From positions 2,418,001 to 2,482,000 of the forward strand of contig CATNEN010000030.1 in assembly GCA_950097015.1 (NCBI GenBank): a DNA stretch of 64,000 bases, in the 5' to 3' direction. The notes beneath the pieces were generated by a model. The model was not told the DNA's origin, ran no database searches, and saw only the letters and a program-made list of their open reading frames with translations. The stretch is from Macrostomum hystrix. Its lineage: Eukaryota > Animalia > Platyhelminthes. Below are positions 29,490 through 60,334 of the stretch, in pieces (position 1 is the first letter of the stretch; each line of letters starts with the position of its first letter). A program made the translations under genes and the position numbers.

Positions 29490-30120
29490 GTGGAGTGAGG
29501 TGGGTGTGGAGTGAGGTGGGTGTGGAGTGAGGTGGGTGTGGAGTGAGGCGGGTAGAAAAGTTTGGTCCGCCGTCTGACCAAAATGATCAGAATTATTCCA
29601 TTAGCTCATTAGGACTTCTAGATTTTCTGCAGTATAACATGCTTGTCCTGCTTTGGGTTGTAGTAAGACAATGACTGATGAATTTTGTAGTGAAGTGGAT
29701 GTGGAGTGAGGCGGGTGTTGAGTGAGTTGGGTGTGGAGTGAGGTGAGTGTTGGAGTAAGGTGGTTGTAACGTGAGTTGGGTGTGGAGTGGTGTGAGTGTT
29801 GGAGTGAGGTGGGTGTGGAGTGAGGTGGGTGTGGAGTGAGGTGAGTGTTGGAGTAAGGTGGTTGTAGCGTGAGTTGGGTGTGGAGTGATGTGAGTGTTGG
29901 AGTGAGGTGGGTGTGGAGTGAGGTGGGTTTGGAGTGAGGTGGGTGTGGAGTGAGGTGGGTGGGTGTTAAGTGAGGTGGGTGTGAATTGAGGTGGGTGTGG
30001 AGTGAGGTATGTGTGGAGTAAGGTGGTGTGGAGTGAGGTGGGTGTGGAGTGAGGTGGGTGGGTGTTAAGTGAGGTGGGTGTGAAGTGAGGTGGGTGTGGA
30101 GTGAGGTGGGTGTGGAGTGA
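29490..30120. repeat. GT-rich ~16-bp satellite, second block
   Basis: Visible; interrupted by the duplicated gene C end. Confidence 0.9.
29547..29705 (+). repeat. Duplicate of gene C terminal codons and 3' UTR (25687-25850)
   Basis: ggcgggtagaa(a/g)agtttggtccgccgtctgaccaaaatga...gtagtgaagtggatgtggagtgag, offset about 3.86 kb. Confidence 0.9.
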
Positions 30121-30458
30121 CAGCAAACAATCCCTCCTGTAATCTTAATCCTACAATTATTTTAAATGTTTCTTTTTGCACTTACTTTTCCAAATTTCTT
30201 TCACAGATTAACAAGGCAATCACGTTTATAAAAATTTGCTCAAGCACTCCTGTATAGTAGACTGCTAGAATCCAGAATAAGTAATGTAAAACATATTTAT
30301 AAAAAAGCAACATTCCTGCTAAAATAATTCAGGACAACTCAGCAGGCCTTTAGCAAGATGCTTTCCTGCGAAAAAAAGTTCATTAAAAGAGCAGAGAAAA
30401 GAAGAAAGAGAAAAGGGAGAGAAGAAGATGAGACAGCTGAGGAAGAGCAGCAGGAGAC

Positions 30459-31095: not shown

Positions 31096-33097
31096 GCTGT
31101 AGATCTTCCAAATGGAAAATAATCAATAGAAGTCGGCTTTCCGACGCACCCCCTTTTCTCCCTTAAGATTAGTCACATGCCAACTTTAGAATTTCTAAAA
31201 ATAGCAACAAAAACTAAATACTCCGCTCGCTGGCCAATCAAATTTTGGAGGCTTTTTTAAGCCGGTAAAGTTTTGTACTACATAAAATATGTATCAAGAG
31301 AAAAGTTTGCTAGGTGAATCGACAAACAGACAGATGGACAGAGTGAGAGAGATCTAGACTGAATGTGCAAGATCTACAGCAGCTCTCTCTAATAGATTAA
31401 TGGGCCTGAATATAAGGCACGGAAGGCCTAATATTAATGGTCTACAAGGGCCATTGGATTTGGGATTTGGGAAGGGGAGATAGAGGGAGAAGGGAGAGCT
31501 TCCTACAGCAGCGTGTTTGATCTCGTCTTCTCTACACCTCAGCATGTAAGTTGTTCCTTGGCGAGACTGAGAGCCGGAGATACAGGGGGAGGGGGACCGA
31601 TTGGCCCCCCAAAGCTTCAAGCTTCATCTATAGGTGGTGTGGGGTGGCGGCCCCAAATGCCATTTCATGACCGTTTGCGATGGCCGGGTCCGACAGCGAG
31701 AAACAAGGGCAGGGACGAGTGCCAGACTGTGAACTTTTCCACTGGCTGGGGCAGCGGCTGCAGCCAAAGCTAAACTAGCCCGTCACCGATGCGTGTTAAG
31801 AGGGCCTGGATAGATTTGGACTGAGTGTCGCAGTCGCAGGCCCTTGTCGCAGGCCCTTGGCTATTTTTCGTTTTTTGTTATTCACGGTGAATGCAGGCAT
31901 CATTGTTCTTATGTACGAGCGAATATTAGTTTTTATCGTTGCTATCAAAATCTAACGTTATGACTGCTGACTTTCGACAATACGAAGATAAAAATGCTTA
32001 AACTTAAACGGCTTAAACGGCTTTAGCGGTAAAAAGTGAGGGTAAGTATTGAAAGGGGGTTAGAAAGGGGATGTAGGATGTAGAAGCAGTATGGGATGAA
32101 ACGATGTAGTTGCTGAGAGTAGAGTAACTGCAATATTAAAAGCGTTTGTACCAACACTGTAGATCGACAGGCAGGCTAGGGCGCGCACTACAAACAGCAG
32201 TGATTTTCTCATTGCCAGTAAGCTACGCCGGGTCACTAGTTGGCAAACAGCTATAGGAAAAAACTCAAGTCCAAATCAAACTAGCCCACACGGGCCCGAT
32301 GCACTGCTAGAAGACACAGCAACTCAAAGCGGAAAACGCAGGAGAGTCAACATTGGATGCCGTGTTTGGAGTGAGTGGCTTGTATTTCAGTTGTATTTCA
32401 AATGCCCACATTTTCTCTTTTCTGTATCTTCCTAAATATTCAACCAATCGCCATGAAAGTCCAGTCTATGCGGGCTACAAGGGGCGAGTGGGTCAGCGGC
32501 TAACGTCGCTGTCTGGCACTCCAAAGGACGCTAGTTCGATTTACCCTTCAAGTCACGATTGATTTCGGGACTTGTTGGGGGTTTGGACAGTAGCGACCGG
32601 CGGAGGTGCACCATATTTCGTGCAATCAAAGCTTGAAATAATAGCTTCGCTCCTACCTTCTGTGTGCCTGTTCTGCGTTGTGTGACTTGTGTGCGTTGGC
32701 GCTGGGGCGTGAGGCCTTGCAGGGGGGTGGCTGGAGGGCGGGTGTACACCGCCGCGCGCTTTCTGGACTTCCGTCAGCGCGATTGGATAAGTGTACTGCA
32801 CTCATCACCCGGCCCCCCCTGAGGACTGATTTCTTATCAGCCTTCCGCCCCGCCCCGGCTTGGTCTGCTATGTGCGTGTGGGGCTGGGGTGGGGGACACT
32901 GCTGCCTATTCTGGGTGCCTCCTGCCCTCCCCGGCTGGTCTGTGCTGCTGTGTGTGGTGCCTGCTCAGGGGAGGCGGCGCGATGGGCGCTAAGCGCCTAG
33001 TTCGCCGGTCTGGGGGCGTGCCGCTCCGTCGCTTGTGCGACAAGTGCCCCGGGCCCCCCTGCAAATAGATAGAGATAGATAGAGATGCGGGCTACAA

Positions 33098-33243
33098 TTT
33101 TTCGCTCTGTCCGTTAAAACAACTTTCAGAATCACAAAACATCGGCATCGTCGAGATATTCAACGGTTTTCGTCCGGGTGTCTGGTAGGCACTAGGCATA
33201 CATTTTCTGCTCACAAAATTTCATTCTGGAACAATGTCGGCTC
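33098..33243. repeat. Dispersed repeat, copy of 2663-2820
   Basis: Colinear diverged match by eye. Confidence 0.7.
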
Positions 33244-33271
33244 CAAAAAATCCAAAGCAGGATTTGAAAAA

Positions 33272-33381
33272 GCGCCTATAGCCTAATGGCTAGAGCGCTA
33301 GGCTAGACTCTACTGATGAGCTCCAAAAAGTGCGAAACGCGTCTGGAGTTGTCTTGGTTCGAATCCTGATTTCAATTTTTT
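33272..33381 (+). ncRNA. tRNA-derived Pol III unit containing type I hammerhead ribozyme (copy 1)
   Basis: A box TAGCCTAATGG 33279-89; CTGATGA 33313-19; stem II GCTC/GTGC (one mismatch); GAAAC-GC-GTC; stem I ACTCTA/TGGAGT; B box GGTTCGAATCC; T6 run. Confidence 0.8.
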
Positions 33382-33995
33382 CTATACATATCGGCATCGA
33401 TTCCAACATTATATTTTTTAAATTCAATGGGCAGTGTCCTCTCTCTCTCCCTCTCTCTCCCTCCCTCTCTCTCTCCCGCTCTCTCTCCCTGCCTCTTTCT
33501 CTCGCTCTCTCTCCCCCTCTCTCTCCCGCTCTCTCTCCCTGCCTCTCTCTCTCCCTCTCTCTCTCCCGCTCTCTCTCCCGCTCTCTGTCGCTCTCTCTCG
33601 CTCTCTCTCCCGCTCTCTCCCGCTCTCTGTCGCTCTCTCTCGCTCTCTCTCGCCTTCTCTCTCTCTGCTTCTCTCCTTCGCTGCTCTCTCTCGCTCTCTC
33701 TCCCGCTCTCTCTCCCGCTCTCTGTCGCTCTCTCTCTCCCTCTCTCCCTCTTTTTCTCTCTCTCTCCCGCTCTCTGTCGCTCTCTCTCCCTCTCTCTACT
33801 GATGAGCTCCAAAAAGAGCGAAACGCGTCTGGAGTTGCCTTGGTTCGAATCCTGAGTTCATTTTTTTCGATACATATCGGAATCGATTCCAACATTAGAT
33901 TTTTGAAATTCAATGGGCAGTGTCCTCTCTCCTCTCTCCCGCTCTCTCTCCCTCTCTCTCTCCCTCTCTGTCGCTCTCTCTCTGTCTCTCTGTTT
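33307..33995 (+). mobile_element. Tandem retrozyme-like repeat: two ~140-bp hammerhead units, each followed by a CT microsatellite
   Basis: Direct repeat 33307-33440 / 33793-33930, period 486 bp. Confidence 0.7.
33794..33836 (+). ncRNA. Type I hammerhead ribozyme (copy 2)
   Basis: CTCTA-CTGATGA-GCTC caaaaa GAGC-GAAAC GC GTC^-TGGAG: perfect stem II, 5-bp stem I, palindromic ACGCGT stem III. Confidence 0.85.
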
Positions 33996-34987: not shown

Positions 34988-35168
34988 CGTCCCTGGTTAC
35001 TTCCCGGTTCCGCACCAGGTCGGACTTGTTGGCCACAATGATGAGGGCAGCCGATTTCCTGGCCTCGCTAACCAGCTCGTTGAGAATCTGCTTAGCGAAG
35101 TTGAAGGAGCGACGGCTGTCCACTGCGAACACAACCATGTAGGCGTCCACGTCCATCACTATCACGCT
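34988..35168 (-). CDS. RGK: RGK GTPase exon with G4 (NKSD)
   Basis: Acceptor aactgcag|; DAYMVVFAVDSRRSF...IIVANKSDLVRNREV; donor G|GTGAGT (phase 1). Confidence 0.9.
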
Positions 35169-35214: not shown

Positions 35215-35420
35215 ACTTCTCGAGTCTAGATGGACTTAAGCACAGGGATCATGATTACGTGAGAGTGAACTCATTCGAGTCTAGATGGACTTGAGCATAG
35301 GGATCATGATTACGTGAGAGTGAACTCATTCGAGTCTAGATGGACTTGAGCATAGGGATCATGATTATGTGAGAGTGAACTCATTCGAGTCTAGATGGAC
35401 TTGGGGATCATGGCCTTGAG
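35215..35420. repeat. 55-bp tandem repeat, about 3.5 copies
   Basis: cgagtctagatggactt at 35221 and 35276 onward. Confidence 0.9.
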
Positions 35421-36594
35421 ACTGAGACTACGAGGAGTACAATAATCCTCAAAAATGGAGGATTGAGAAAATCTTCCCCCGGAACTTTCTTTCCCAAAAA
35501 AATGATGAAGTCCTTCTGATCCCCAAATCCTTTGCTGAATGTCTTCTGTTGGACACGAGAGAAAAAGAAATTGAATCGGCAGTGTTAATCCCTGGCGAGT
35601 AGATCGCCACTGCAGCCTCTGCCCTTGCTGGTTCTCTCTTTCAAAAAGTGCGAATTATTTTTTTCTGCAGAAGAAATGACAGGGATTTACAAATCTGCAA
35701 CTAATTACTTGGGATCTGGAGGTGGGGGTTGGCAGTGTGGGTGACAGCTGTTTTAGGCTACTGCCCGGCAACAGAGAAGGCCGTCTGATAATATTGTGTG
35801 CTCACACTGCATTGTCTGTGCTCACACGAGACGAAAGCAATCGGTGCGCGCTGAATCGGAGAGACAGAAAGTCACAGATAGATAACGGAAGTGACAGAGA
35901 AGCAGTTCTGTGTAGATGCCATATCTGTATGCTGAGGTTCGTACTTGCATCATCTGGCTGTAAACTTCAAGGGCCCAATTGCAATCGCTTCGGGGTGAAG
36001 AGACAGTCAGCTCGAGTCGTTAAAGTAATTTTCGCTATTCGATTTGCAATGTATTAGAGTTGTTCTGTGCTCAAAGACTCAAACTCGAGCTAACCGTGAC
36101 GTCAAAGCACAATGAAATTGGCCAGAAAAAATGATTGCTAGTCTAGCCCGTTGGTTTTCTAAGAAATGAAATTTATTTTTAAAATTCTTTCTGACTGCTC
36201 AGTGACTAGAGTCTATGGGCTAGAATAGCAATCCATTACTGTAATACTCAGACATCATCACTATTTCTGATTAGAAAAATAGTGAAGCAAGGAAAAAAAG
36301 GAAGACAATTATAGAATTACTCAGAGGAAAGTGTTGCAGAAGCAAAACAATGAAGCACTGGCTAAGCTTATAAGCTAGACTATTGATAAAATATTGCATT
36401 GCACTTTGTTAACCTTGTTGTAAAGCTGAAATGGGTGATGCGAAAGTGTGCCAGAACACAACAATGAATATTCAGCAATGCATTACAATTAGCTACTGCT
36501 AAGTATATAGCTACTAATTTCATGCAGCTACGATTGAATAACAACGTTTATTGAGTCAGTCATTAGCTATTTGTATTAACAGCGGATGTTAAAT

Positions 36595-36985
36595 GGGATG
36601 GCGGAGATGGCGGGAATGGCGGGGGTGGCGGGGATGGCGGGGATGGCGGGGATGGCGGGGGTGGCGGGGATGGCGGGTATGGCGGGTATGGCGGGTATGG
36701 CGGGGATGGCGGAGATGGCGGGGATTGCGGGGACAGCGGGCATGGCGGGGATGGCGGAGATGGCAGGGACGGCGGGGACATCGGGCATGGCGGGGATGGC
36801 GGGGATGGCGGGGATGGCGGGGATGGCGGGGATGGCGGGGATGTCGGGGATGGCGGGGATGGCGGGGATGGCGGGGATGTCGGGGATGGCGGGGATGGCG
36901 GGGATGGTGGGGACAGCGGGCATGGCTGGGATGGCGGGGATGGCAGGGATGGCGGGGATGGCGGGGATGGCGGGGATGGCATGCA
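36595..36985. repeat. 9-bp minisatellite GGGATGGCG
   Basis: Visible; in an RGK intron. Confidence 0.95.
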
Positions 36986-37082
36986 AAGATTGCGAGGATG
37001 GCGTCAGCGCACAGGTTTGTGTTATTGTGGAATCCTTAGAGGTCATTGTTCCAAGTCTCATTCGATGTGTTCGACAACCAAC

Positions 37083-37189
37083 CTTGGGATCGTCGGCTCT
37101 CTCGGTGTCCAAGAAGGTCATGTGGTACTCCTCGCTGTCCAGCAGCACGGTCACGAATTTCTCCTGCGACTCGTCCAGCTGATCGTCTT
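37083..37189 (-). CDS. RGK: RGK GTPase exon with divergent G3
   Basis: Acceptor ccgcccag| (phase 1); KFVTVLLDSEEYHMTFLDTER; donor AAG|GTTGGT (phase 0). Confidence 0.85.
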
Positions 37190-38409: not shown

Positions 38410-38990
38410 CTCGACCTTTGACCAAGAGTTTGACTTTAACCTATAGTTCGACCTTGACCTAGAGTTCGACCTTGACCTAGAGTTCGACCTTGACCTAGAG
38501 TTCGACCTTGACCTAGAGTTCGACCTTGACCTATAGTTCGACCTTGACCTAGAGTTCGACCTTGACCTAGAGTTCGACCTTGACCTAGAGTTCGACCTTG
38601 ACCTAGAGTTCGACCTTGACCTAGAGTTCGACCTTGACCTAGAGTTCGACCTTGACCTAGAGTTCGACCTTGAACTTCAATAGTTCGACCTTGACCTAGA
38701 GTTTGATCTTGACCTAGAGTTCGAACTTGAACTTCAATTGTTCGACCTTGACCTAGAGTTCGACTTTGACCTAGAGTTCGACCTTGACCTAGAGTTCGAC
38801 TTTGACCTAGAGTTCGACCTTGACCTAGAGTTCGACCTTGACCTAGAGTTTGACCTTGACCTAGAGTTCGACTTTGACCTAGAGTTCGACCTTGACCTAG
38901 AGTTCGACCTTGACCTAGAGTTCGACTTTGACCTAGAGTTCGACTTTGACCTAGAGTTCGACCTTGACCTAGAGTTTGAGCTTGTGCCTA
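38410..38990. repeat. 18-bp minisatellite GACCTTGACCTAGAGTTC
   Basis: Visible; in an RGK intron. Confidence 0.95.
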
Positions 38991-39043
38991 GACATCCTAA
39001 ATCCTGGAAAGATAGTAAACTACAGACAAATGCGCGATCTCAC

Positions 39044-39795
39044 CCGTGGAATCCAACACCTTGTTCTCGGAGGACATAAACTGTTCGCACATGGTGGTCT
39101 TGCCCACCCTGGGTGCGCCCATCACCTGCACCCTGTACGACTGGCACGGGCTGCAGGAGGGCAGTGTGTACAGGATGGGGACCGCGCACACTGACGGCGC
39201 TGCTGCCGCCGCTGCCGCGCAGCCGCCGCAGTCGGCAATACCGCCCGAAGCTGCTGAACTGCTGCGACGCCTCTCCAGCTGCTGCTGCTGATGCAGGCGA
39301 GAATCCGAGCCGGCAGATCCGATGGCCACTGGTGGCACCTCCATGAAGGCTGGCGTCATAGAAGGCTGCGGCTGCTGAGGCGGCTGCGGCTGTCTCAGCT
39401 CCAGCTCACTGTTTGTAGCCGAGCTGTTGTTGAGGCTGCAGTTGCTGCGCGCCTTCCTCACCTCGTCGCCCTGATTGACGAGGCCGTGCTTAGTCCGCTT
39501 GAAGCTGCGCACCCGCACCAGCTGCTCTCGCGGCTCCGGCAGTTCGAGAGTTTCGCCCTCGCGCCGGCTGCCTGGCCGCTCCTTGACGCTGCCGTGCAGT
39601 CGCCGGCCGGACATGCTGCTCGAGCGAGGCCTGCTGGATCCGGATGCTTCGCCCGCCTCTGATGCGCCCGCCGCCGCTGCCGCCGGTTGTGGAGCTAGAG
39701 CCGCTGCCGCTGCTGCTGTTGACTCCGGCAGAGCTGAACAACGTCGCCTGCTGTGCTTGCAGGAAGCAGACCGGCTGTGCCTGCAGACCTGCTGA

Positions 39796-40029: not shown

Positions 40030-40990
40030 GAGGAGAGCCCTCTAGATACGTGCTAGAAGAGAGCCCTCTTTATACTGCGCTAGAAGAGAGCCCTCTAGAT
40101 ACTGTGCTAGAAGAAAAGATCTCTAGATACTGTGCTAGAAGAGAGCCCTCTTTATACTGCGCTAGAAGAGAGCCCTCTAGATACTGTGCTAGAAGAAAAG
40201 ATCTCTAGATACTGTGCTAGAAGAAAGCCCTCTAGATACTGTGCTAGAAGAGAGCCCTCTAGATACTGTGCTAGAAGAAAGCCCTCTTGATACTGTGCTA
40301 GAAGAAAGCCCTCTAGATACTGTGCTAGAAGAGAGCCCTCTAGATACTGTGCTAGAAGAAGCCCTCTAGATACTGTGCTAGAAGAAAAGATCTCTAGATA
40401 CTGTGCTAGAAGAAAAGATCTCTAGATACTGTGCTAGAAGAAAGCCCTCTAGATACTGTGCTAGAAGAGAGCCCTCTAGATACTGTGCTAGAAGAAAGCC
40501 CTCTAGATACTGTGCTAGAAGAAAAGATCTCTAGATACTGTGCTAGAAGAAAGCCCTCTAGATACTGTGCTAGAAGAGAGCCCTCTAGATACTGTGCTAG
40601 AAGAAAGCCCTCTTGATACTGTGCTAGAAGAGAGCCCTCTAGATACTGTGCTAGAAGAGAGCCATCTAGATACTGTGCTAGAAGAAGCCCTCTAGATACT
40701 GTGCTAGAAGAGAGCCCTCTAGATACTGTGCTAGAAGAAAATATCTCTAGATACTGTGCTAGAAGAGAGCCCTCTAGATACTGCGCTAGAAGAGAGCCCT
40801 CTAGATACTGTGCTAGAAGAAAAGATCTCTAGATACTGTGCTAGAAGAGAGCCCTCTAGATACTGTGCTAGAAGAAAAGATCTCTAGATACTGTGCTAGA
40901 AGAAAGCCCTCTAGATACTGTGCTAGAAGAGAGCCCTCTAGATACTGTGCTAGAAGAGAGCCCTCTAGATACTGTGCTAGAAGAAAGCCT
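40030..40990. repeat. 27-bp minisatellite CTCTAGATACTGTGCTAGAAGAGAGCC
   Basis: Visible; in RGK intron 1. Confidence 0.95.
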
Positions 40991-41044
40991 AATAGATTTT
41001 CAAATAAGGCCCTCTAGAATCATGACTCTGGCTACAGCACTTAC

Positions 41045-50985: not shown

Positions 50986-52431
50986 GAGATCCCCATACTA
51001 CACAGATCCTATTGCTGTGAGATACCTTGTAATTACTACACAGATCCCGTTGCAGTGAGATCCCCATACTACACAGATGCCATTGCTGTGAGATACCTTG
51101 TAATTACTACACAGATCCCGTTGCAGTGAGATCCCCATACCGCACATATCCATACTAGGGTCTATCTAAAACGCTTTCCCTATCCTAGTGTGGGAGCAAA
51201 TCCTCATTTTGTACGCAACTAGTGCAGGCACAAAATTTAGATGGCCCTCTGTTGGCGTGCCATGAGATTTCGTGAGCACCCCGTGAGAACAGATAGCATT
51301 GCCTGGGAAACTTTCGCACACCGAGTTAGTACCACGTTGCTGGGTTAAAGTGTGGTTGCTATGTGCGTGGAGGGTAGGAAGGAGAGAAAACAGGGTCGAG
51401 CTAGATAAGACAGACCCTTCAAAGTGCAAAATTCGTCTAGCGAGCCATGCAGCGACCACTTTCGATGGGAGAAAAATCGATCAGCATGTTGGAATCCCGC
51501 CTTTGGGAAATGACGCTGGTATAAGGGATCTGCTTAGTCATTTGGAGTCCCAAAACTTCTCTCCTCATCTTTCTGAGTTCCAACTTAGGGATTTTTAGTG
51601 CAAATTGGGAAGACGAGAGGTCAGGAGGGATATTTGGGTGAGAAATAAACTGGGGAGTCCCGGCTATCAATTGTGCAAAGTGGAAAATGAAGTTACAAAT
51701 GGGGATGGGGCGAGGAAGGACAAGGAGAGGGGAAAATTATCCCATTTGGTGTCTATCGGTCTTTCCTTATCTCCCCTCTCTTGTCCTTCGGCCTTCCTGT
51801 CCAGTTGCCCAATTAGGAGGCTACCGAGTGCCACAATGGGCTAAACTGTATATTTCCATTCGCCCAAAGTGGGGATGGAAATGGCCGGGCCGATAATAAA
51901 AGTACAAACTGAGTTCCAACGCGGCGTGAAGGATTAACAAATGCTAAAGAAGCTTTGCATTGCCAGTAGAATGAAAAAATATAGGCCCAAAGAGAGAAAG
52001 CCTATCTGCAGTTTTTTGCCTTCTTAGGAAAAACATTTCCCCTAGAAGAGGTGGCAGCGAAAATCATTTGCTTGGATTTCTCTTTCCTCCGGCATGATCC
52101 CCAGCAGGTCCTCAAGTACACTCCAGTGCGCCCCGCTACTTTATAATCCCGTACTACTGCTGCTGCTGCTACGCAAAAGACAACACTGACATTTGGGCAC
52201 CGACTATGCGCAGCAATCTTTGGACCAGATTTTTCCCATATTGCCAGTTCAATCCCTTACTGGCCTGGTGCGCTGTTTCACATCCGAAATCATAAATCTG
52301 TGACAGATGGGATATTTTTTCTCCATAGAGTGACTTTTTCTCTTGCTGAGAAGCATGGAGAAGCACCACTAGAACTACTAGACATGATGTGCGCCCAGTA
52401 CAATTTCACTTGTCTATTCAAAGACCATTAA

Positions 52432-53615
52432 GCCAATGTACTCATACTGCACATCTAGATACTCATACTGCACATCTAGCTACTCATACTGCACATCTAG
52501 CTACTCATACTGCACATCTAGCTACTCATACTGCCGTCTAGCTACTCATACTGCACATCTAGCTACTCATACTGCACATCTAGCTACTCATACTGCACAT
52601 CTAGCTACTCATACTGCCGTCTAGCTACTCATACTGCACATCTAGCTACTCATACTGCACATCTAGATACTCATACTGCACATCTAGCTACTCATACTGC
52701 ACATCTAGCTACTCATAAAGCACATCTAGCTACTCATACTGCACATCTAGCTACTCATACTGCACATCTAGCTACTCGTACCGCGCATCTAGCTACTCAT
52801 ACTGCCCTCTAGCTACTCATAAAGCACATCTAGATACTCATACTGCACATCTAGCTACTCATACTGCACATCTAGCTACTCGTACCGCGCATCTAGCTAC
52901 TCATACTGCCGTCTAGCTACTCATAAAGCACATCTAGCTACTCATAATGCACATCTAGCTACTCATAAAGCACATCTAGCTACTCATAAAGCACATCTAG
53001 CTACTCATAATGCACATCTAGATACTCATACTGCACATCTAGCTACTCGTACCGCCCATCTAGCTACTCATACTGCCGTCTAGCTACTCATACTGCACAT
53101 CTAGATACTCATAAAGCACATCTAGCTACTCGTACTGCCGTCTAGCTACTCATGAAGCACATCTAGCTACTCATGAAGCACATCTAGCTACTCGTACCGC
53201 GCATCTAGCTACTCATACTGCCGTCTAGCTACTCATAAATCACATCTAGCTACTCATAAAGCACATCTAGCTACTCATACTGCACATCTAGCTACTCATA
53301 CTGCACATCTAGCTACTCATACTGCACATCTAGCTACTCATACTGCCGTCTAGCTACTCATAAAGCACATCTAGCTACTCATACTGCACATCTAGCTAAT
53401 TATACTGCATATCTAGCTACTTGAACTGCACATCTAGCTAATCATAATGCACAACTAGCTATTCATACTGCACATCTATCTACTCATACTGCACATCTAG
53501 CTAATTATTCTGCATATCTAGCTACTTGAACTGCACATCTAGCTAATCATAATGCACATCTAGCTAATCATGATGCACATCTATCTACTCATACTGCACA
53601 TCTAGCTACTGGTAC
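52432..53615. repeat. 21-bp minisatellite CTACTCATACTGCACATCTAG
   Basis: Visible. Confidence 0.95.
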
Positions 53616-54169
53616 TGCCACCTGCCACTAGTTTGAACTCACCGAGAGATGTCTGCAGTCAGAAGCTCTGGCTCAGTTACAGTGGCTGTCCCTGTTCGGC
53701 TCGGGGCGTGTTGCTACTGCCTCGTTTCTACCGTAGTGCTGCGTCTCATCTTTCAACAGTCCGGCGAAGTTTTTTTCTTACCACCCAATCAGCCCGTATT
53801 AGGCTAAGGGCCTGCTACTCCAACAGCGGCCTGTTTGCATGCGCGGGCACGTCCAATAGAATTCGTTCTAGCTGAGAAGATTCACTAGATTCACGTAGGG
53901 ACATGATGGAGAGTGCACGAAAGCTGGGATAGAAATGTAGGACGCTAGAAATAATAAGAGGGAGGAAATGAAGGAAATAACTCTACAAGTAGGGAGAATG
54001 AAAACTGTTCAAGAAAATATCTGAGGAAATCTGGATTCACAACATGCTAAGTGTTTATTCGAGGCTATATTAAAATTCATTTCCGGGAATTTTTGTGGGA
54101 ACGTGCCCCTCTGTCTCGATATCTCGTCCTCGTCTTCTAAATTCTGCGTTAAGGCGAGGAATTAATAAA

Positions 54170-55020
54170 AATTCTCTCCCACGCCTTCTCTCTCTCGCCT
54201 TCTTCTCCCTCGCCTTCTCTCCCTCGCTTTCTCTACCTCGCTTTCTTCTCCCTCGACTTCTCTCCCTCGCCTTCTCTCCCTCGCCTTCTTCTCCCTCGCC
54301 TTCTCTCCCTCGCTTTCTCTACCTCGCTTTCTCTACCTCGCTTTCTCTACCTCGCTTTCTCTACCTCGCTTTCTTCTCCCTCGACTTCTCTCCCTCGCCT
54401 TCTCTCCCTCGCCTTCTTCTCCCTCGCCTTCTCTCCCTTGCTTTCTTTTCAATTGCCTTCTCTCCCTCGCCTTCTCTCTCTCGCCTTCTTCTCCCTCGCC
54501 TTCTCTCCCTTGCCTTCTTCTCCCTCGACTTCTCTCCCTCGCTTTCTCTACCTCGCTTTCTTCTCCCTCGACTTCTCTCCCTTGCTTTCTTTTCAATTGC
54601 CTTCTCTCCCTCGCCTTCTCTCTCTCGCCTTCTTATCCCTCGCCTTCTCTCCCTTGCCTTCTTCTCCCTCGCCTTCTCTCCCTCGCTTTCTCTACCTCGC
54701 TTTCTTCTCCCTCGACTTCTCTCCCTCGCTTTCTTCTCCCTCGCTTTCTTCTCCCTCGCTTTCTTCTCGCTCGCCTTCTCTCCCTCACTTTCTTCTCCCT
54801 CGCTTTCTTCTCCCTCACTTTCTTCTCCCTCGCTTACTTCTCCCTCGCTTTCTTCTCCCTCACTTTCTTCTCCCTCGCTTTCTTCTCCCTCACTTTCTTC
54901 TCCCTCGCTTTCTTCTCCCTCGCTTTCTTCTCCCTCGACTTCTCTCCCTCGCTTTCTTCTCCCTCGCTTTCTTCTCGCTCGCCTTCTCTCCCTCACTTTC
55001 CTCTTTCTCGCTTTCTCTCT
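54170..55020. repeat. CT-rich ~15-bp minisatellite CTCCCTCGCTTTCTT
   Basis: Visible. Confidence 0.9.
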
Positions 55021-55754
55021 CTTACTCATCAAATTGGCCAAGACGCCTTCTCTATCAGGTCAATGATAATTTTCCATCGCACTTGACCTGACTACCTTGG
55101 AGTGTTGCCTATCCGTCAACGAAGGTGATAGAATTGGCTAAGCTAAATTGGTCACAGCCCTGCATGCAGCTGTTCGTTCCCTCAGTTGGCACCTGCCCCA
55201 GCATCTACTTTGGGCATGCATCTCTCTGAGCCTAATTTTTCTTTCACTCAAAAGGCTGCTCACCTAGGAGCTGGGGCCGGGCGGAGGCGCAGATGTGGCA
55301 GGACCGGCTAATAAACAATTCAGTCCTGGCGCCCATTGCGACAAATCCAATCGATTTTCTATTTTTGCCCAACGCTCTCTCCGCGACAGTTTCTCACTGT
55401 TTTTCTGTAGTTAGAGAGCTTTCACAATCGCCCTGTCGCCTAGGATTAAGTGCAGAGTATAGCTATGGATGCAGAGACCAAATCTGAGGCCCTCAAAATT
55501 ATTGATTGAGCATTTGAAGCATCTGCAGTTATTGTTTACCGCATGCGGTGTTGGCGTCCTGTTAATGAGAGCACAATGCCGTGTCATCTCAAGGGTAAGC
55601 ATCAGCATAGCAATTCGCCGGAAAATCAGAAAGCCCGATGTACTATAAAATATGGAGGAACGTCTAAGTAGCACTTTCTTACATTTTATTGAATACAACT
55701 TTTATTAGTAACGATTTTTTATCCATGAAGAATCTTTTTACTCTACTAATTTCA

Positions 55755-56540: not shown

Positions 56541-58127
56541 TAACGTCTTTTCAATCTATTAGTTACGATATTTTAATTTTTAAGTAGCGACTTTTAGCAT
56601 GACTTTGAGTAACGATATTTCAAACAACAATATGGATTCGCCATGAGTATGAGTAAGGATATTTACTCACTACGTAAATTTTGATCCAAATGTTGGACTT
56701 TCAAGAAAATCGGTCGCTCGGTTAATTTCATAGCTCCCAAGACCTATGACGCCAACACCGATTAATGAAAAAATTGCTAATTTAAACTAGTAAAATCTTG
56801 CTCATTGTGTTAAAAAATCTTAATTTTACACACCAAAATGTCAATTAGAGATGTGCTTCATTTGCAAACACACATTATATTATATTTAGTTTCTAAGCAG
56901 TGATTTTATAACTCATTTCTTTAATAATACACTTTTTATATAGTGCCACAGTGATTTGTTTAAGAACTTAGTTAAACAATATAATGAGATCGAGCAGCTT
57001 TGTTAAATACAGGTTCCGCTTGCAAATAAAAACTATTGAATGATTAAACCCGCTGCGTGGTCCGGGGTTCGACTCCAGCCAGCTTCAAAGCGAATTGTTA
57101 TAATTTTACCATGCAGATATAAGATTTCAGAGAGCAAAACAGAAAAGACTGGACAGTGTTAACAGCAACACAATGAGAGCAGCTAGAGCTGTATGAAATG
57201 GTATGTTTTACTTGTTACTTAGCTCTTTCAAACTCACACAATATTAAATATATAAAGCCAATAAGCATGATCCGCGTAAAAATAGAAAGTTAACAAACAA
57301 TTATTTTTTATTAATATATTAGGCTAGTGAGCAAAGCAAACACATGATGCCTTTTGGAGCAAATCATTACTACTTAAGTAGAAACATACAACACTCTACC
57401 TCGGTTTAAAATCGGCCTTCTAAACCTGATTGGCCCATTACGGTTTAACATGTGACTATTTTCATATCTCTGTCTTAGTCACACCTAATCACGTGACTGG
57501 CCACAGCCAATTATAAACTTAAAAGGGATGATTTATACTAAATTTGAGTGTTGCATCGCACTGCACTACTTATAGTAAAACACACTGAAATTGGCGCACT
57601 AATAAGTAGAAAAAGAAATTTAATATGCAAAAACATCACAACTGTATTTTATTAGAATGGTGAAAGCTAAAATCTGGCCAAAAAAAATAACTGCACGGAA
57701 AACACTGAGGAATGAATTTCTAAGGCTTTGGAAAAGAAAAATTCACAGTTCTAGTCCAGCTATTTATAAGAAATCGTGTTAAGTAAAAGAGCACACTATA
57801 TGGATTGTTTTCTCTGCTAATAAACAATAACAGACAACATATAGAATAGAAATTATATATTGTAATGTGAACTTTCAACACAGACCAAGTAGGGAATGGT
57901 GAATACTGGAGAATGATCAAATACCTGCCAATGAAAACGCTTTACAAAATAGTAAGTAAGGATGGGCAAACTCAATAATACAGACTCGAGAAGTATGGCA
58001 AGTGTGAGTTAGCTTAATTAGTTTAGACCTGTACATTGGAAATTGTAGTTCTAATTAAAAATAACAAAAATAATTTATTACACCTGCCCTAATCGGGCCC
58101 GATGTGCAGCCGACAGCACAGCCGCAG

Positions 58128-58919: not shown

Positions 58920-59003
58920 CTCGTGAATTGTGCCAGCTTCAGCTGCCTGAGAAGCCTGCGATGTCCCAGCGCACGCACCGTTATTGTCCTCGGCTGCAGG
59001 AGC
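58920..59003 (-). CDS. CORO: Coronin short exon (28 aa)
   Basis: Acceptor tattttag|, donor GAG|GTGAGA, phase 0/0; APAAEDNNGACAGTSQASQAAEAGTIHE. Confidence 0.75.
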
Positions 59004-59029
59004 CTAAAATAGTTGGCAGTTCTGGGATC

Positions 59030-59455
59030 ACAGAGTGATAGACCATTTCTGGGATCAGAGAGTGATAGACCATTTCTGGGATCAGAGAGTGATAGACCAT
59101 TTCTGGGATCAGAGAGTGATAGGACCATTTCTGGGATCAGAGAGTGATAGGAACATTTCTGGGATCAGAGAGTGATAGGACCATTTCTGGGATCAGAGAG
59201 TGATAGGAACATTTCTGGGATCACAGAGTGATAGGAACATTTCTGGGATCAGAGAGTGATAGACCATTTCTGGGATCAGAGAGTGATAGGACCATTTCTG
59301 GGATCACAGAGTGATAGGACCATTTCTGGGATCAGAGAGTGATAGACCATTTCTGGGATCAGAGAGTGATAGGACCATTTCTGGGATCACAGAGAGTGAT
59401 AGGACCATTTCTGGGATCAGAGAGTGATTGGGTTAGTTCAGGGATCAGAGAGTGC
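59030..59455. repeat. 27/28-bp minisatellite TTCTGGGATCAGAGAGTGATAGGACCAT
   Basis: Visible; in a coronin intron. Confidence 0.95.
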
Positions 59456-59457
59456 CT

Positions 59458-59828
59458 CAGACTCACCCGCACAGCAGTCACTCACCTGCACAGCAGAGTC
59501 ACTCACCCGCACAGCAGTCACTCACCTGCACAGCAGAGTCACTCACCCGCACAGCAGTCACTCACCCGCACAGCAGAGTCACTCTCCCGCACAGCAGTCA
59601 CTCACCTGCACAGCAGAGTCACTCACCCGCACAGCAGAGTCACTCACCTGCACAGCAGAGTCACTCACCTGCACAGCAGAGTCACTCACCCGCACAGCAG
59701 AGTCACTCACCCGCACAGCAGAGTCACTCACCTGCACAGCAGAGTCACTCACCCGCACAGCAGAGTCACTCACCTGCACAGCAGAGTCACTCACCCGCAC
59801 AGCAGAGTCACTCACCCGCACAGCAGAA
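59458..59828 (-). repeat. 21/19-bp minisatellite built from a splice donor (TCTGCTGTGCRG|GTGAGTGAC)
   Basis: Visible; straddles the coronin exon end. Confidence 0.95.
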
Positions 59829-60334
59829 GTGTCAGCGGGCACACGCGCCACGAATCCTGTGGTGACGGTGGAGGCCCGCCGCTTGACTAACGCCGAATCG
59901 TCCTTCGAGACAGTGGGTGTTGAATTATCGTCGGCAGCTGCAACGACGGCTAAGCCAGCTGCTGAGGCAAACGCCAGTCGAGGTGTTGAACGCGGATGTC
60001 GAAAGCTCTGAGCTCGCCGGCCAGAGAAGGAGCCGCCGCCGGCCCCAGTCGGAGACTCGGCCGGCGCGTCCAGGTGCTCGAATTTTTCCAACAGGCGGGA
60101 GAATTTCTCCGGACCGCAGCTACCGGCAGCCTTGGCGTCAGCCTGTTCAGCTTCTGGGGCCGATGCTAATTCCGCCACCGACAACGGCTGAGTTTGAGTT
60201 TGAGGCTGAGGTTGCGGCGGCAACACTGCTAGTTTCGGCGGAGATGCGGCCTGCACCAGGTGCTGAATATTGTGAAGAGTTCCAGGCATCTGCAAGGCTG
60301 GTTGCTGATGATCGCCTCCGTTACCATTAGCAAC
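59816..60334 (-). CDS. CORO: Coronin unique-region exon (3' end ambiguous, 11 in-frame donors)
   Basis: Acceptor gatccag| (phase 0), open GC-rich frame, first donor CGG|GTGAGT at 59815. Confidence 0.75.

Follow-up and report, generated by a model that had tools for sequence, protein, structure and literature searches.

We consider it likely that the locus described here, which lies within the 64,000 nt of Macrostomum hystrix DNA analysed (the window), contains two worn copies of a mobile repeat that is multi-copy and non-coding and in which a type I hammerhead ribozyme motif is nested in a tRNA-derived A-box/B-box promoter and the cassette is enclosed by inverted-repeat arms. The central cassette is nearly whole in copy 1 (33254-33437, plus strand), and copy 2 (33794-33925, plus strand) is 5'-truncated. 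The order in copy 1 is A box, hammerhead, B box and a run of six T (T6), spanning 33272-33381 on the plus strand.

The hammerhead motif and the Pol III boxes of copy 1

The cassette begins with a tRNA 5'-half-like segment (33272-33298), recognized from the sequence and from RNA folding, which combines an acceptor-like part with a D-arm-like part. The acceptor-like GCGCCTA (33272-33278) forms a 7-nt leader and is followed by the Pol III A box TAGCCTAATGG (33279-33289), which fits TRGCNNANNGG and starts at the place of tRNA position 8. The stretch TAGAGCGC then leads from the A box to the AGGC with which the type I hammerhead (33300-33354) opens. In the hammerhead, a distal helix I (AGGC/GTCT, 33300-33303/33351-33354) is flanked by an internal loop, with TAG on the 5' side and T on the 3' side, and continues into helix I proper (ACTCTA/TGGAGT, 33307-33312/33344-33349), which is followed by the core CTGATGA (CUGAUGA in RNA, 33313-33319), helix II (GCTC/GTGC, 33320-33323/33330-33333, with a U.U mismatch at 33322/33331) around the loop CAAAAA, the core GAA (33334-33336), and the helix III palindrome ACGCGT (ACGCGU in RNA, 33337-33342). 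From its position in the hammerhead consensus, the predicted self-cleavage site lies between C17 (33343) and U1.1 (33344). The B box GGTTCGAATCC (33356-33366), an exact match to GGTTCGANNCC, and the T6 run (33376-33381), a potential Pol III terminator, complete the cassette; all of these features are on the plus strand, as is the 3' tail of the repeat (33382-33437), which is common to copy 2 and contains the ACATATCGG.ATCGATTC part.

Both the sequence and the alignment to the Rfam Hammerhead_HH9 model (hereafter HH9) give a complete conserved core in each copy, comprising C3-A9, G12-A14, the A15.1-U16.1 pair and C17; in copy 1, A15.1-U16.1 corresponds to A33337/U33342 and H17 to C33343. Helix I consists of 6 bp, the UAG/U internal loop and then the 4-bp distal helix, an arrangement shared with the HH9 model, and helix II has 4 bp in copy 2, as against the U.U mismatch in copy 1. 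As a monomer, helix III has only an A-U and a C-G pair with a 2-nt loop and is too short to close as a hairpin, while the self-complementary ACGCGU makes a 6-bp intermolecular helix III between two motifs possible. Since helix III is represented by this palindrome alone, two motifs would have to pair for cutting to occur. Metazoan canonical type I hammerheads are described as having 6 bp in helix I, 4 bp in helix II and 1–2 bp in helix III with a small palindromic loop, and as acting as dimers (PMC4209133). Judging from its sequence, the motif is a canonical metazoan type I hammerhead with a loop 2 and a helix I internal loop, and it differs from the loop-less 'minimal' motif of Penelope-like elements (PMC4209133), with which the earlier note had grouped it.

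The HH9 model (RF02275; gathering score 52) matched copy 1 end to end in a local search with 33.2 bits (E=6.8e-7), and the core of copy 2 with 32.0 bits (E=1.4e-6). At gathering thresholds, Rfam returned zero matches in the entire window, as both copies score under 52, and we count this against our reading; the shortfall is mainly due to a helix III that is shorter than that of the model. The Rfam search that had been proposed as a check on the motif thus gave local matches to both copies, but nothing at gathering score, and the emptiness of the default whole-window search is explained by the copies falling under that score. The pattern CTGATGA-N(4-30)-CGAAAC, searched on both strands, was found twice in the window compared with 0.05 expected. 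Exact hammerhead patterns had 0 matches in metagenome, viral and prokaryote genome collections. A looser pattern, the hammerhead 3' core followed by a B box, was found at 151 loci, which were rejected as unrelated, none of the 151 having CTGATGA upstream.

When copy 1 was folded by nearest-neighbour rules, the hammerhead fold (−7.1 kcal/mol) was less stable than a structure with the competing helix GCUCCA:UGGAGU (−12.1 kcal/mol), which counts against our reading. The strands of this helix are the helix II 5' strand plus loop (GCUCCA) and the helix I 3' strand (UGGAGU), and it may represent an inactive alternative conformer or an accident. Cofolding of both hammerheads did not return the double-hammerhead structure, and for this reason we regard thermodynamic prediction as uninformative for these motifs.

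The A and B boxes, in order and on one strand, constitute a predicted type 2 internal Pol III promoter, with a separation of 66 nt between A box and B box in copy 1. An A box followed by a B box 25–90 nt further on occurs once in the window and in 0 of 200 first-order Markov simulations, and GGTTCGANNCC occurs three times compared with 0.32 expected. The T6/T7 run is located ~55 nt ahead of the 3' end common to both copies and is therefore internal to the repeat, so that a Pol III transcript would omit part of the unit, which we again count against our reading. One contig, from a putative RNA library, stops exactly at 33381, the last T of T6, and is weakly suggestive of termination.

Likeness to a tRNA is confined to parts of the cassette. 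ARAGORN identified no tRNA in the whole window (a further point against our reading), and no credible tRNA in the region with intron options and relaxed scores or after 195 trial excisions of the hammerhead, the whole series giving two implausible calls, at a 70% threshold; likewise, the Rfam tRNA model was absent among local matches with E up to 10. The anticodon-stem place is occupied roughly by distal helix I, and in this sense the hammerhead does stand 'in place of the anticodon loop', as the earlier note had put it. However, the statement holds for position only: a cloverleaf is missing, no 3' acceptor strand is present, the weak T stem is down to two G-C pairs, and for the 5' half a self-contained fold is predicted, in which GCGC pairs with GCGC to close the hairpin TAGCC/GGCTA. 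Descent from a tRNA gene that has lost its cloverleaf is indicated by the two boxes and their order, by the 7-nt leader and by TAGAGCGC.

Other statements of the earlier note on the cassette stood up well. The letters that it quoted for 33272-33381 are all in place and correct to the base; the type I hammerhead that it described, with full core and extended helix I, is present (HH9 match of 33.2 bits), and so is the GCCT that it gave for the distal helix in copy 2. Its placing of the hammerhead between Pol III-type A and B boxes, with a T-run after them, is borne out by the absence of such box pairs from the simulations, and its choice of C33343 as the predicted cut position agrees with the hammerhead consensus.

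The repeat family, its arms and the second copy

Logan contigs of four public runs from organisms A-C, two of DNA type and two of RNA type, were compared with the locus over 33097-33440. Contigs match 33254-33435 with 9 differences in 182 nt and 33254-33381 with 5 differences in 128 nt, and diverge upstream, where copy 1 is 5'-truncated. Word depth summed across the cassette reaches thousands to tens of thousands in X10, one of the DNA runs, although this measure does not equal copy number. As far as these sequence comparisons go, the hammerhead cassette is part of a multi-copy repeat. The homology of the family extends from before 33254 to ~33437, beyond the T-run. The repeat family supposed in the earlier note is upheld by multi-copy sequence in the contigs of four runs, but the ~110-nt unit from A box to T6 is not the repeat unit.

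All contigs are identical to copy 1 at every core position. At 33331, by contrast, copy 1 has T where all contigs and copy 2 have A, the letter that restores the U-A pair of helix II, and the helix II mismatch of copy 1 is thus private and probably harmful. At 33352, copy 1 has T vs. C in the consensus, with pairing kept as G.U, which we count in favor of our reading. The other differences between contigs and copy 1 fall at 33327 (loop 2) and at 33383 and 33395 (tail).

Upstream of 33254, the letters of the contigs are unlike those of the locus and equal the reverse complement of the ACATATCGG.ATCGATTC part of the element's own tail. Because the contig ends mirror the tail in this way, the family has outer inverted-repeat arms, of which copy 1 lacks the left one. 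An inner pair of arms was found by self-BLAST at the locus itself, with the left arm at 33245-33268 (plus strand) pairing with 33358-33381, over the B box and the T-run, along 24 nt at 83%. When 33245-33381 was compared with 200 shuffles, none of them reached the stability of its predicted fold (z=−3.8).

The sequence just upstream, 33097-33242, is a separate repeat whose depth in these runs is ~10 times greater; another copy of it, without a hammerhead, is found at 2662-2819. No target-site duplication was found at the junctions near 33243-33253 and 33990, which counts against our reading. The sequence ATCGGCATCG, present at 33144 and 33390, was considered as a target duplication and rejected, since the 33144 copy belongs to the separate repeat (the same stretch is found at 2662-2819), and since at 33390 the family consensus differs.

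The two copies are separated by a CT-rich degenerate minisatellite with periods of 8–12 bp (33438-33793, plus strand), and a second, shorter array of the same kind (33926-33990, plus strand) is found 3' of copy 2. Copy 2 is cut off within the helix I 5' strand, and it has neither an A box nor the 5' strand of distal helix I, the CT-rich minisatellite taking the place of the A-box half. What it retains, on the plus strand, is a hammerhead (33794-33834) with a predicted cut after C33829, a B box (33842-33852) and a T7 run (33861-33867). Five bp of helix I are kept, the distal 3' strand reads GCCT, and helix II is intact (GCUC/GAGC), with GAGC where copy 1 has GTGC, which is the only difference between the two hammerheads in 31 nt. 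The predicted cuts of these two same-strand hammerheads are 486 nt apart, and ~350 nt of this spacing is CT minisatellite.

From helix I to the tail, the two copies differ at 8 of 133 nt (94% identity). The differences are divided between the hammerhead (1 of 42) and the remainder (7 of 91) with p=0.43, so that constraint, judged from two copies only, is not significant, and this too counts against our reading. Each copy has ~4 private changes, and no non-consensus letter is common to both; the pair may have arisen by local duplication or by two insertions. On the present sequence evidence, the locus is an ordinary damaged pair of copies, for which an interpretation at the level of the family is sensible.

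Comparison with known hammerhead-bearing elements

Among the closest known kinds are Sm-alpha and Sj-alpha of schistosomes, flatworm repeats that, like the repeat at the locus, are high-copy and non-coding and have a tRNA-derived Pol III promoter together with a canonical type I hammerhead. They are ~330-bp repeats in which loop 2 is of the CAAA type and helix III is short (PMC2770079, PMC6765202), and both features are alike in the repeat described here. Sm-alpha, a tRNA-derived SINE-like element with a hammerhead, is said to be transcribed by Pol III and to depend on tandem arrangement (PMC2770079, PMC6765202). However, in Sm-alpha the promoter precedes the ribozyme (PMC6765202, PMC2770079), whereas in the repeat at the locus the ribozyme is located between the A and B boxes, and as a result cleavage would split the promoter. 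Further, the heads of Sm-alpha are called tRNA-Gln by tRNAscan-SE, and their tRNA part is contiguous (PMC2770079, PMC6765202), whereas ARAGORN calls no tRNA in the repeat at the locus.

Similarities are also found with the metazoan non-LTR retrozymes (Cervera and de la Pena 2020), which share the type I hammerhead whose helix III is weak and palindromic, the non-coding unit, a few hundred nt long, and strong predicted self-pairing (PMC7229834, PMC7761336). The circRNAs of retrozymes show a high degree of self-pairing and are ligated through RtcB (PMC7229834), and the self-pairing of the unit RNA has its counterpart in the fold of 33245-33381 and in the outer arms of the contigs. Metazoan retrozymes co-occur with Penelope-like elements (PMC7229834, PMC7761336). 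By contrast, described retrozymes have no apparent transcriptional promoters (PMC7761336), whereas the repeat at the locus has the A and B boxes and the T-run. In addition, retrozymes occur in tandem (PMC7229834, PMC7761336), as compact head-to-tail units of ~170–400 nt that each have a type I hammerhead, whereas the two same-strand hammerheads at the locus are 486 nt apart and have CT minisatellite between them, a difference that counts against our reading.

The HH9 family of intronic amniote hammerheads has a consensus, CUGAUGA-GCUC-CAAAAA-GAGC-GAAAC, that equals copy 2 letter for letter, and it resembles the motif at the locus in its 6-bp helix I with an internal loop and a distal helix, as well as in its intronic location. 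However, helix III has 3 bp with a 5-nt loop in the HH9 model, compared with 2 bp and a 2-nt loop here, and HH9 is a single conserved locus, whereas the present motif is repeat-borne and antisense to its host gene. The pseudo-LTR hammerheads of Penelope-like elements are similar in being dimer-dependent type I motifs on retroelements that form partial tandems, undergo 5' truncation and insert in association with microsatellites (PMC4209133, PMC8557442), but their 'min-HHR' is without loop 3, has a longer helix II and is highly variable, whereas the motif at the locus has the canonical form.

For a ribozyme nested between A and B boxes, for natural hammerheads at the tRNA anticodon position and for hammerheads in Macrostomum, a full-text literature search of incomplete coverage returned nothing relevant. 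Taken together, the repeat appears to be of a broadly known kind; what would be new is the nesting of the ribozyme between the boxes, and it is the described layout that sets it apart from Sm-alpha.

A similar design is known from the laboratory. In engineered constructs, the anticodon region of a tRNA gene receives a hammerhead, which is then expressed by Pol III, or the ends made by ribozymes are held by a stem for ligation by RtcB. Such tRNA-embedded ribozymes and ribozyme-plus-RtcB circular RNA systems were reportedly described by Cotten and Birnstiel in 1989 and by Litke and Jaffrey in 2019 ('Tornado'). Engineered tRNA-ribozyme constructs are artificial, whereas the repeat at the locus is natural and would follow the same design logic with a predicted ribozyme.

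Proposed mechanism, alternative readings and implications

Minus-strand exon-like frames around the element encode an RGK/Ras-like GTPase in pieces, as read from the ORFs, including a P-loop GAPRVGKT near 39119, an FLDTE near 37100, an NKSD in 35195-34983 (near 35030), and a C-terminal exon EISTA ... KSCEE (30806-30462). A protein atlas confirmed the RGK/Ras-like exon. The hammerhead element is located between the NKSD piece and the C-terminal exon and is therefore intronic and antisense to the RGK-like gene, as the earlier note had proposed, with the P-loop, NKSD and C-terminal exon frames all on the opposite strand. Because the element is antisense, the host pre-mRNA would have the complement strand, without the hammerhead. 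No reverse transcriptase ORF was found in the window, as judged from nine long ORFs, on which Pfam gave no match. It is unlikely that the locus matters for the RGK-like host gene.

By analogy with the elements discussed above, we infer that the family may be transcribed, cleaved, ligated and mobilized as follows. TFIIIC would bind the boxes, and a ~110-nt RNA with one hammerhead would be made by Pol III, with initiation a short distance upstream of 33272 and termination in the T-run; alternatively, tandem copies would be transcribed by read-through. The palindrome ACGCGU would then pair, either between two of these RNAs or between two units on one longer transcript, and form helix III, and each hammerhead would cut on the 3' side of its GUC, so that the products have 2',3'-cyclic phosphate and 5'-OH ends. 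The cut would separate the A-box half, ending in the 2',3'-cyclic phosphate, from the B-box half, starting with the 5'-OH. Unit-length RNAs from tandems might be joined by RtcB and copied by a retrotransposon reverse transcriptase, as has been proposed for Sm-alpha and the metazoan retrozymes; the Sm-alpha propagation model needs multimeric transcripts from tandems (PMC6765202), and in the retrozyme model the RNA is additionally circularised by RtcB and copied by a Penelope-type reverse transcriptase (PMC7229834, PMC7761336). Two observations are at odds with a simple Pol III SINE, namely that the T-run precedes the common 3' end by ~55 nt and that the left arm is upstream of the predicted start. 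The mobile unit is therefore probably made by read-through, with the boxes as a relic or an auxiliary promoter. At the locus itself, both boxes are present in copy 1 alone, in which helix II is weakened, and the pre-mRNA does not contain the ribozyme, and hence the locus is most likely inert or weakly active.

The tRNA scaffold could also do more than serve as a promoter. Ends of the 2',3'-cyclic-phosphate and 5'-OH type, in such a geometry, are the usual substrates of the tRNA splicing ligase RtcB, and a hammerhead at the place of the anticodon loop or tRNA intron might produce RtcB-type ends that are held by the flanking stems, making the element a natural counterpart of the ribozyme-plus-RtcB circular RNA systems. 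We regard this extension of our reading as improbable; if it were true, the A/B promoter would be broken by cleavage and restored by ligation or through tandem cDNA.

Several alternatives to the reading of two worn copies have to be weighed. The pair might be an active retrozyme locus, in which a plus-strand transcript is cut after 33343 and after 33829 by the dimer, and a 486-nt RNA is freed and circularised. The two hammerheads on the same strand, with their identical palindromic helix III and the intact helix II of copy 2, would suit such a role, and non-LTR retrozymes are defined by a tandem layout of hammerheads (PMC7229834). However, T6 (33376-33381) would halt Pol III before copy 2, which has no A box of its own, and the only known transcription at the locus is that of the RGK-like gene on the opposite strand. 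Moreover, ~350 of the 486 nt would be CU-rich minisatellite that is unable to self-pair, unlike described retrozyme circles, copy 1 has the U.U mismatch in helix II, and copy 2 is reduced to 5 bp in helix I. Given the T6 stop and the CU-rich spacing, a 486-nt circle from the pair is unlikely, and we consider an active locus of this kind quite improbable. The enclosure of the cassette by inner and outer inverted repeats instead recalls a DNA-level foldback or MITE-type transposon, whose terminal inverted repeats would be the arms and whose passengers would be the tRNA-like and hammerhead parts. Yet rod-like self-pairing characterizes retrozyme and viroid-like RNAs just as well (PMC7229834, PMC7761336), the two copies are 5'-truncated with the same 3' end, which is the pattern of reverse transcription rather than of cut-and-paste, and the true termini of the family are not among the sequence at the locus; a transposon of this type is thus an unlikely explanation.

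It is more doubtful still that copy 1 is an independent Pol III gene for a small RNA that serves the cell, i.e., that a tRNA-like RNA cuts itself into halves and no mobile element is involved. The compact unit of A box, ribozyme, B box and T-run (~110 nt) would suit such a gene, as would the putative RNA library contig that ends exactly at the last T of the run. We consider it very unlikely, however, as the homology among copies and contigs continues ~55 nt beyond the T-run and upstream into the inverted-repeat arms, the sequence is multi-copy across the runs of several organisms, copy 1 departs from the consensus at the helix II pair, and a tRNA fold is absent. A resemblance to a hammerhead and to Pol III boxes by chance alone, with which the failure to reach any Rfam gathering score would agree, is effectively refuted by E values of ~1e-6 in both copies, by two motifs vs. 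0.05 expected, by the absence of A/B pairs from 200 simulations and by a core that is identical across independent contigs.

Our preferred reading, a mobile repeat with a ribozyme nested in its promoter, bears on how ribozyme-bearing repeats are grouped. Two groups have been described, elements with a promoter ahead of the ribozyme, such as Sm-alpha, and promoter-less retrozymes, and the nested layout would link both if it is functional. In that case, self-cleavage would part the promoter halves, and a transcribable unit would be restored only by ligation or tandem copying. A functional family of this kind would also provide a natural, compact, Pol III-driven self-cleaving cassette in the genome of a laboratory flatworm genus.

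Alternative fold of the predicted hammerhead

In copy 1, the 5'-truncated hammerhead-bearing repeat at 33254-33437 (+), the 3' strand of helix I of the predicted type I ribozyme (UGGAGU, within 33344-33350) is also able to pair with GCUCCA, which spans helix II and loop 2 (within 33319-33325). This pairing is predicted to yield a non-ribozyme fold that is more stable, both in copy 1 and in copy 2, the second copy of the repeat, which is without the A-box half (33794-33925, +). It may represent an inactive conformer or a coincidence.

Other repeats and the host gene

The third exact B-box match of the window, GGTTCGACTCC, lies within 57040-57090 in T-arm-like surroundings (GGTCCGGGGTTCGACTCCAGCC); neither a tRNA call nor an A box was noted there, and the site may be a piece of another tRNA-derived repeat.

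The RGK/Ras-like GTPase gene, in one of whose introns the hammerhead element lies antisense, comprises at least four exon-like pieces on the minus strand (39845-30462), with a long N-terminal frame rich in glutamine and alanine. A word-based protein search with its first exon returned no relatives at E ≤ 1e-5. Close to its NKSD exon, on the downstream side (plus strand), a 55-bp unit is tandemly repeated about 3.4 times (35220-35408; 94-97% identity). Long minisatellite arrays are unusually abundant in the window (about 29600-30160, 36580-37000, 38440-39000, 40070-41000, 52400-53400, 54100-55100, and 59000-59900) and are open in several reading frames; most long ORFs on the window's ORF list come from them.

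Sequences flanking the hammerhead element

Copy 1 and copy 2 are each directly followed by a CT-rich degenerate minisatellite of the same kind (33438-33793 and 33926-33990, respectively; 8-12 bp periods, motifs including CTCTCTCTCCCG and CTCTCTGTCG), which begins in both right after ...GGGCAGTGTCC. It could be the tail of the hammerhead element, a favoured target, or the sequence on which a local duplication acted.

Directly 5' of copy 1 lies a distinct repeat (33097-33242), which recurs in the window at 2662-2819 (158 nt, 76% identity). Summed over contigs, its depth in the four public runs exceeds that of the hammerhead element about tenfold. The contigs diverge past approximately 33165, 33186, and 33242, and this branching suggests a module common to several families.
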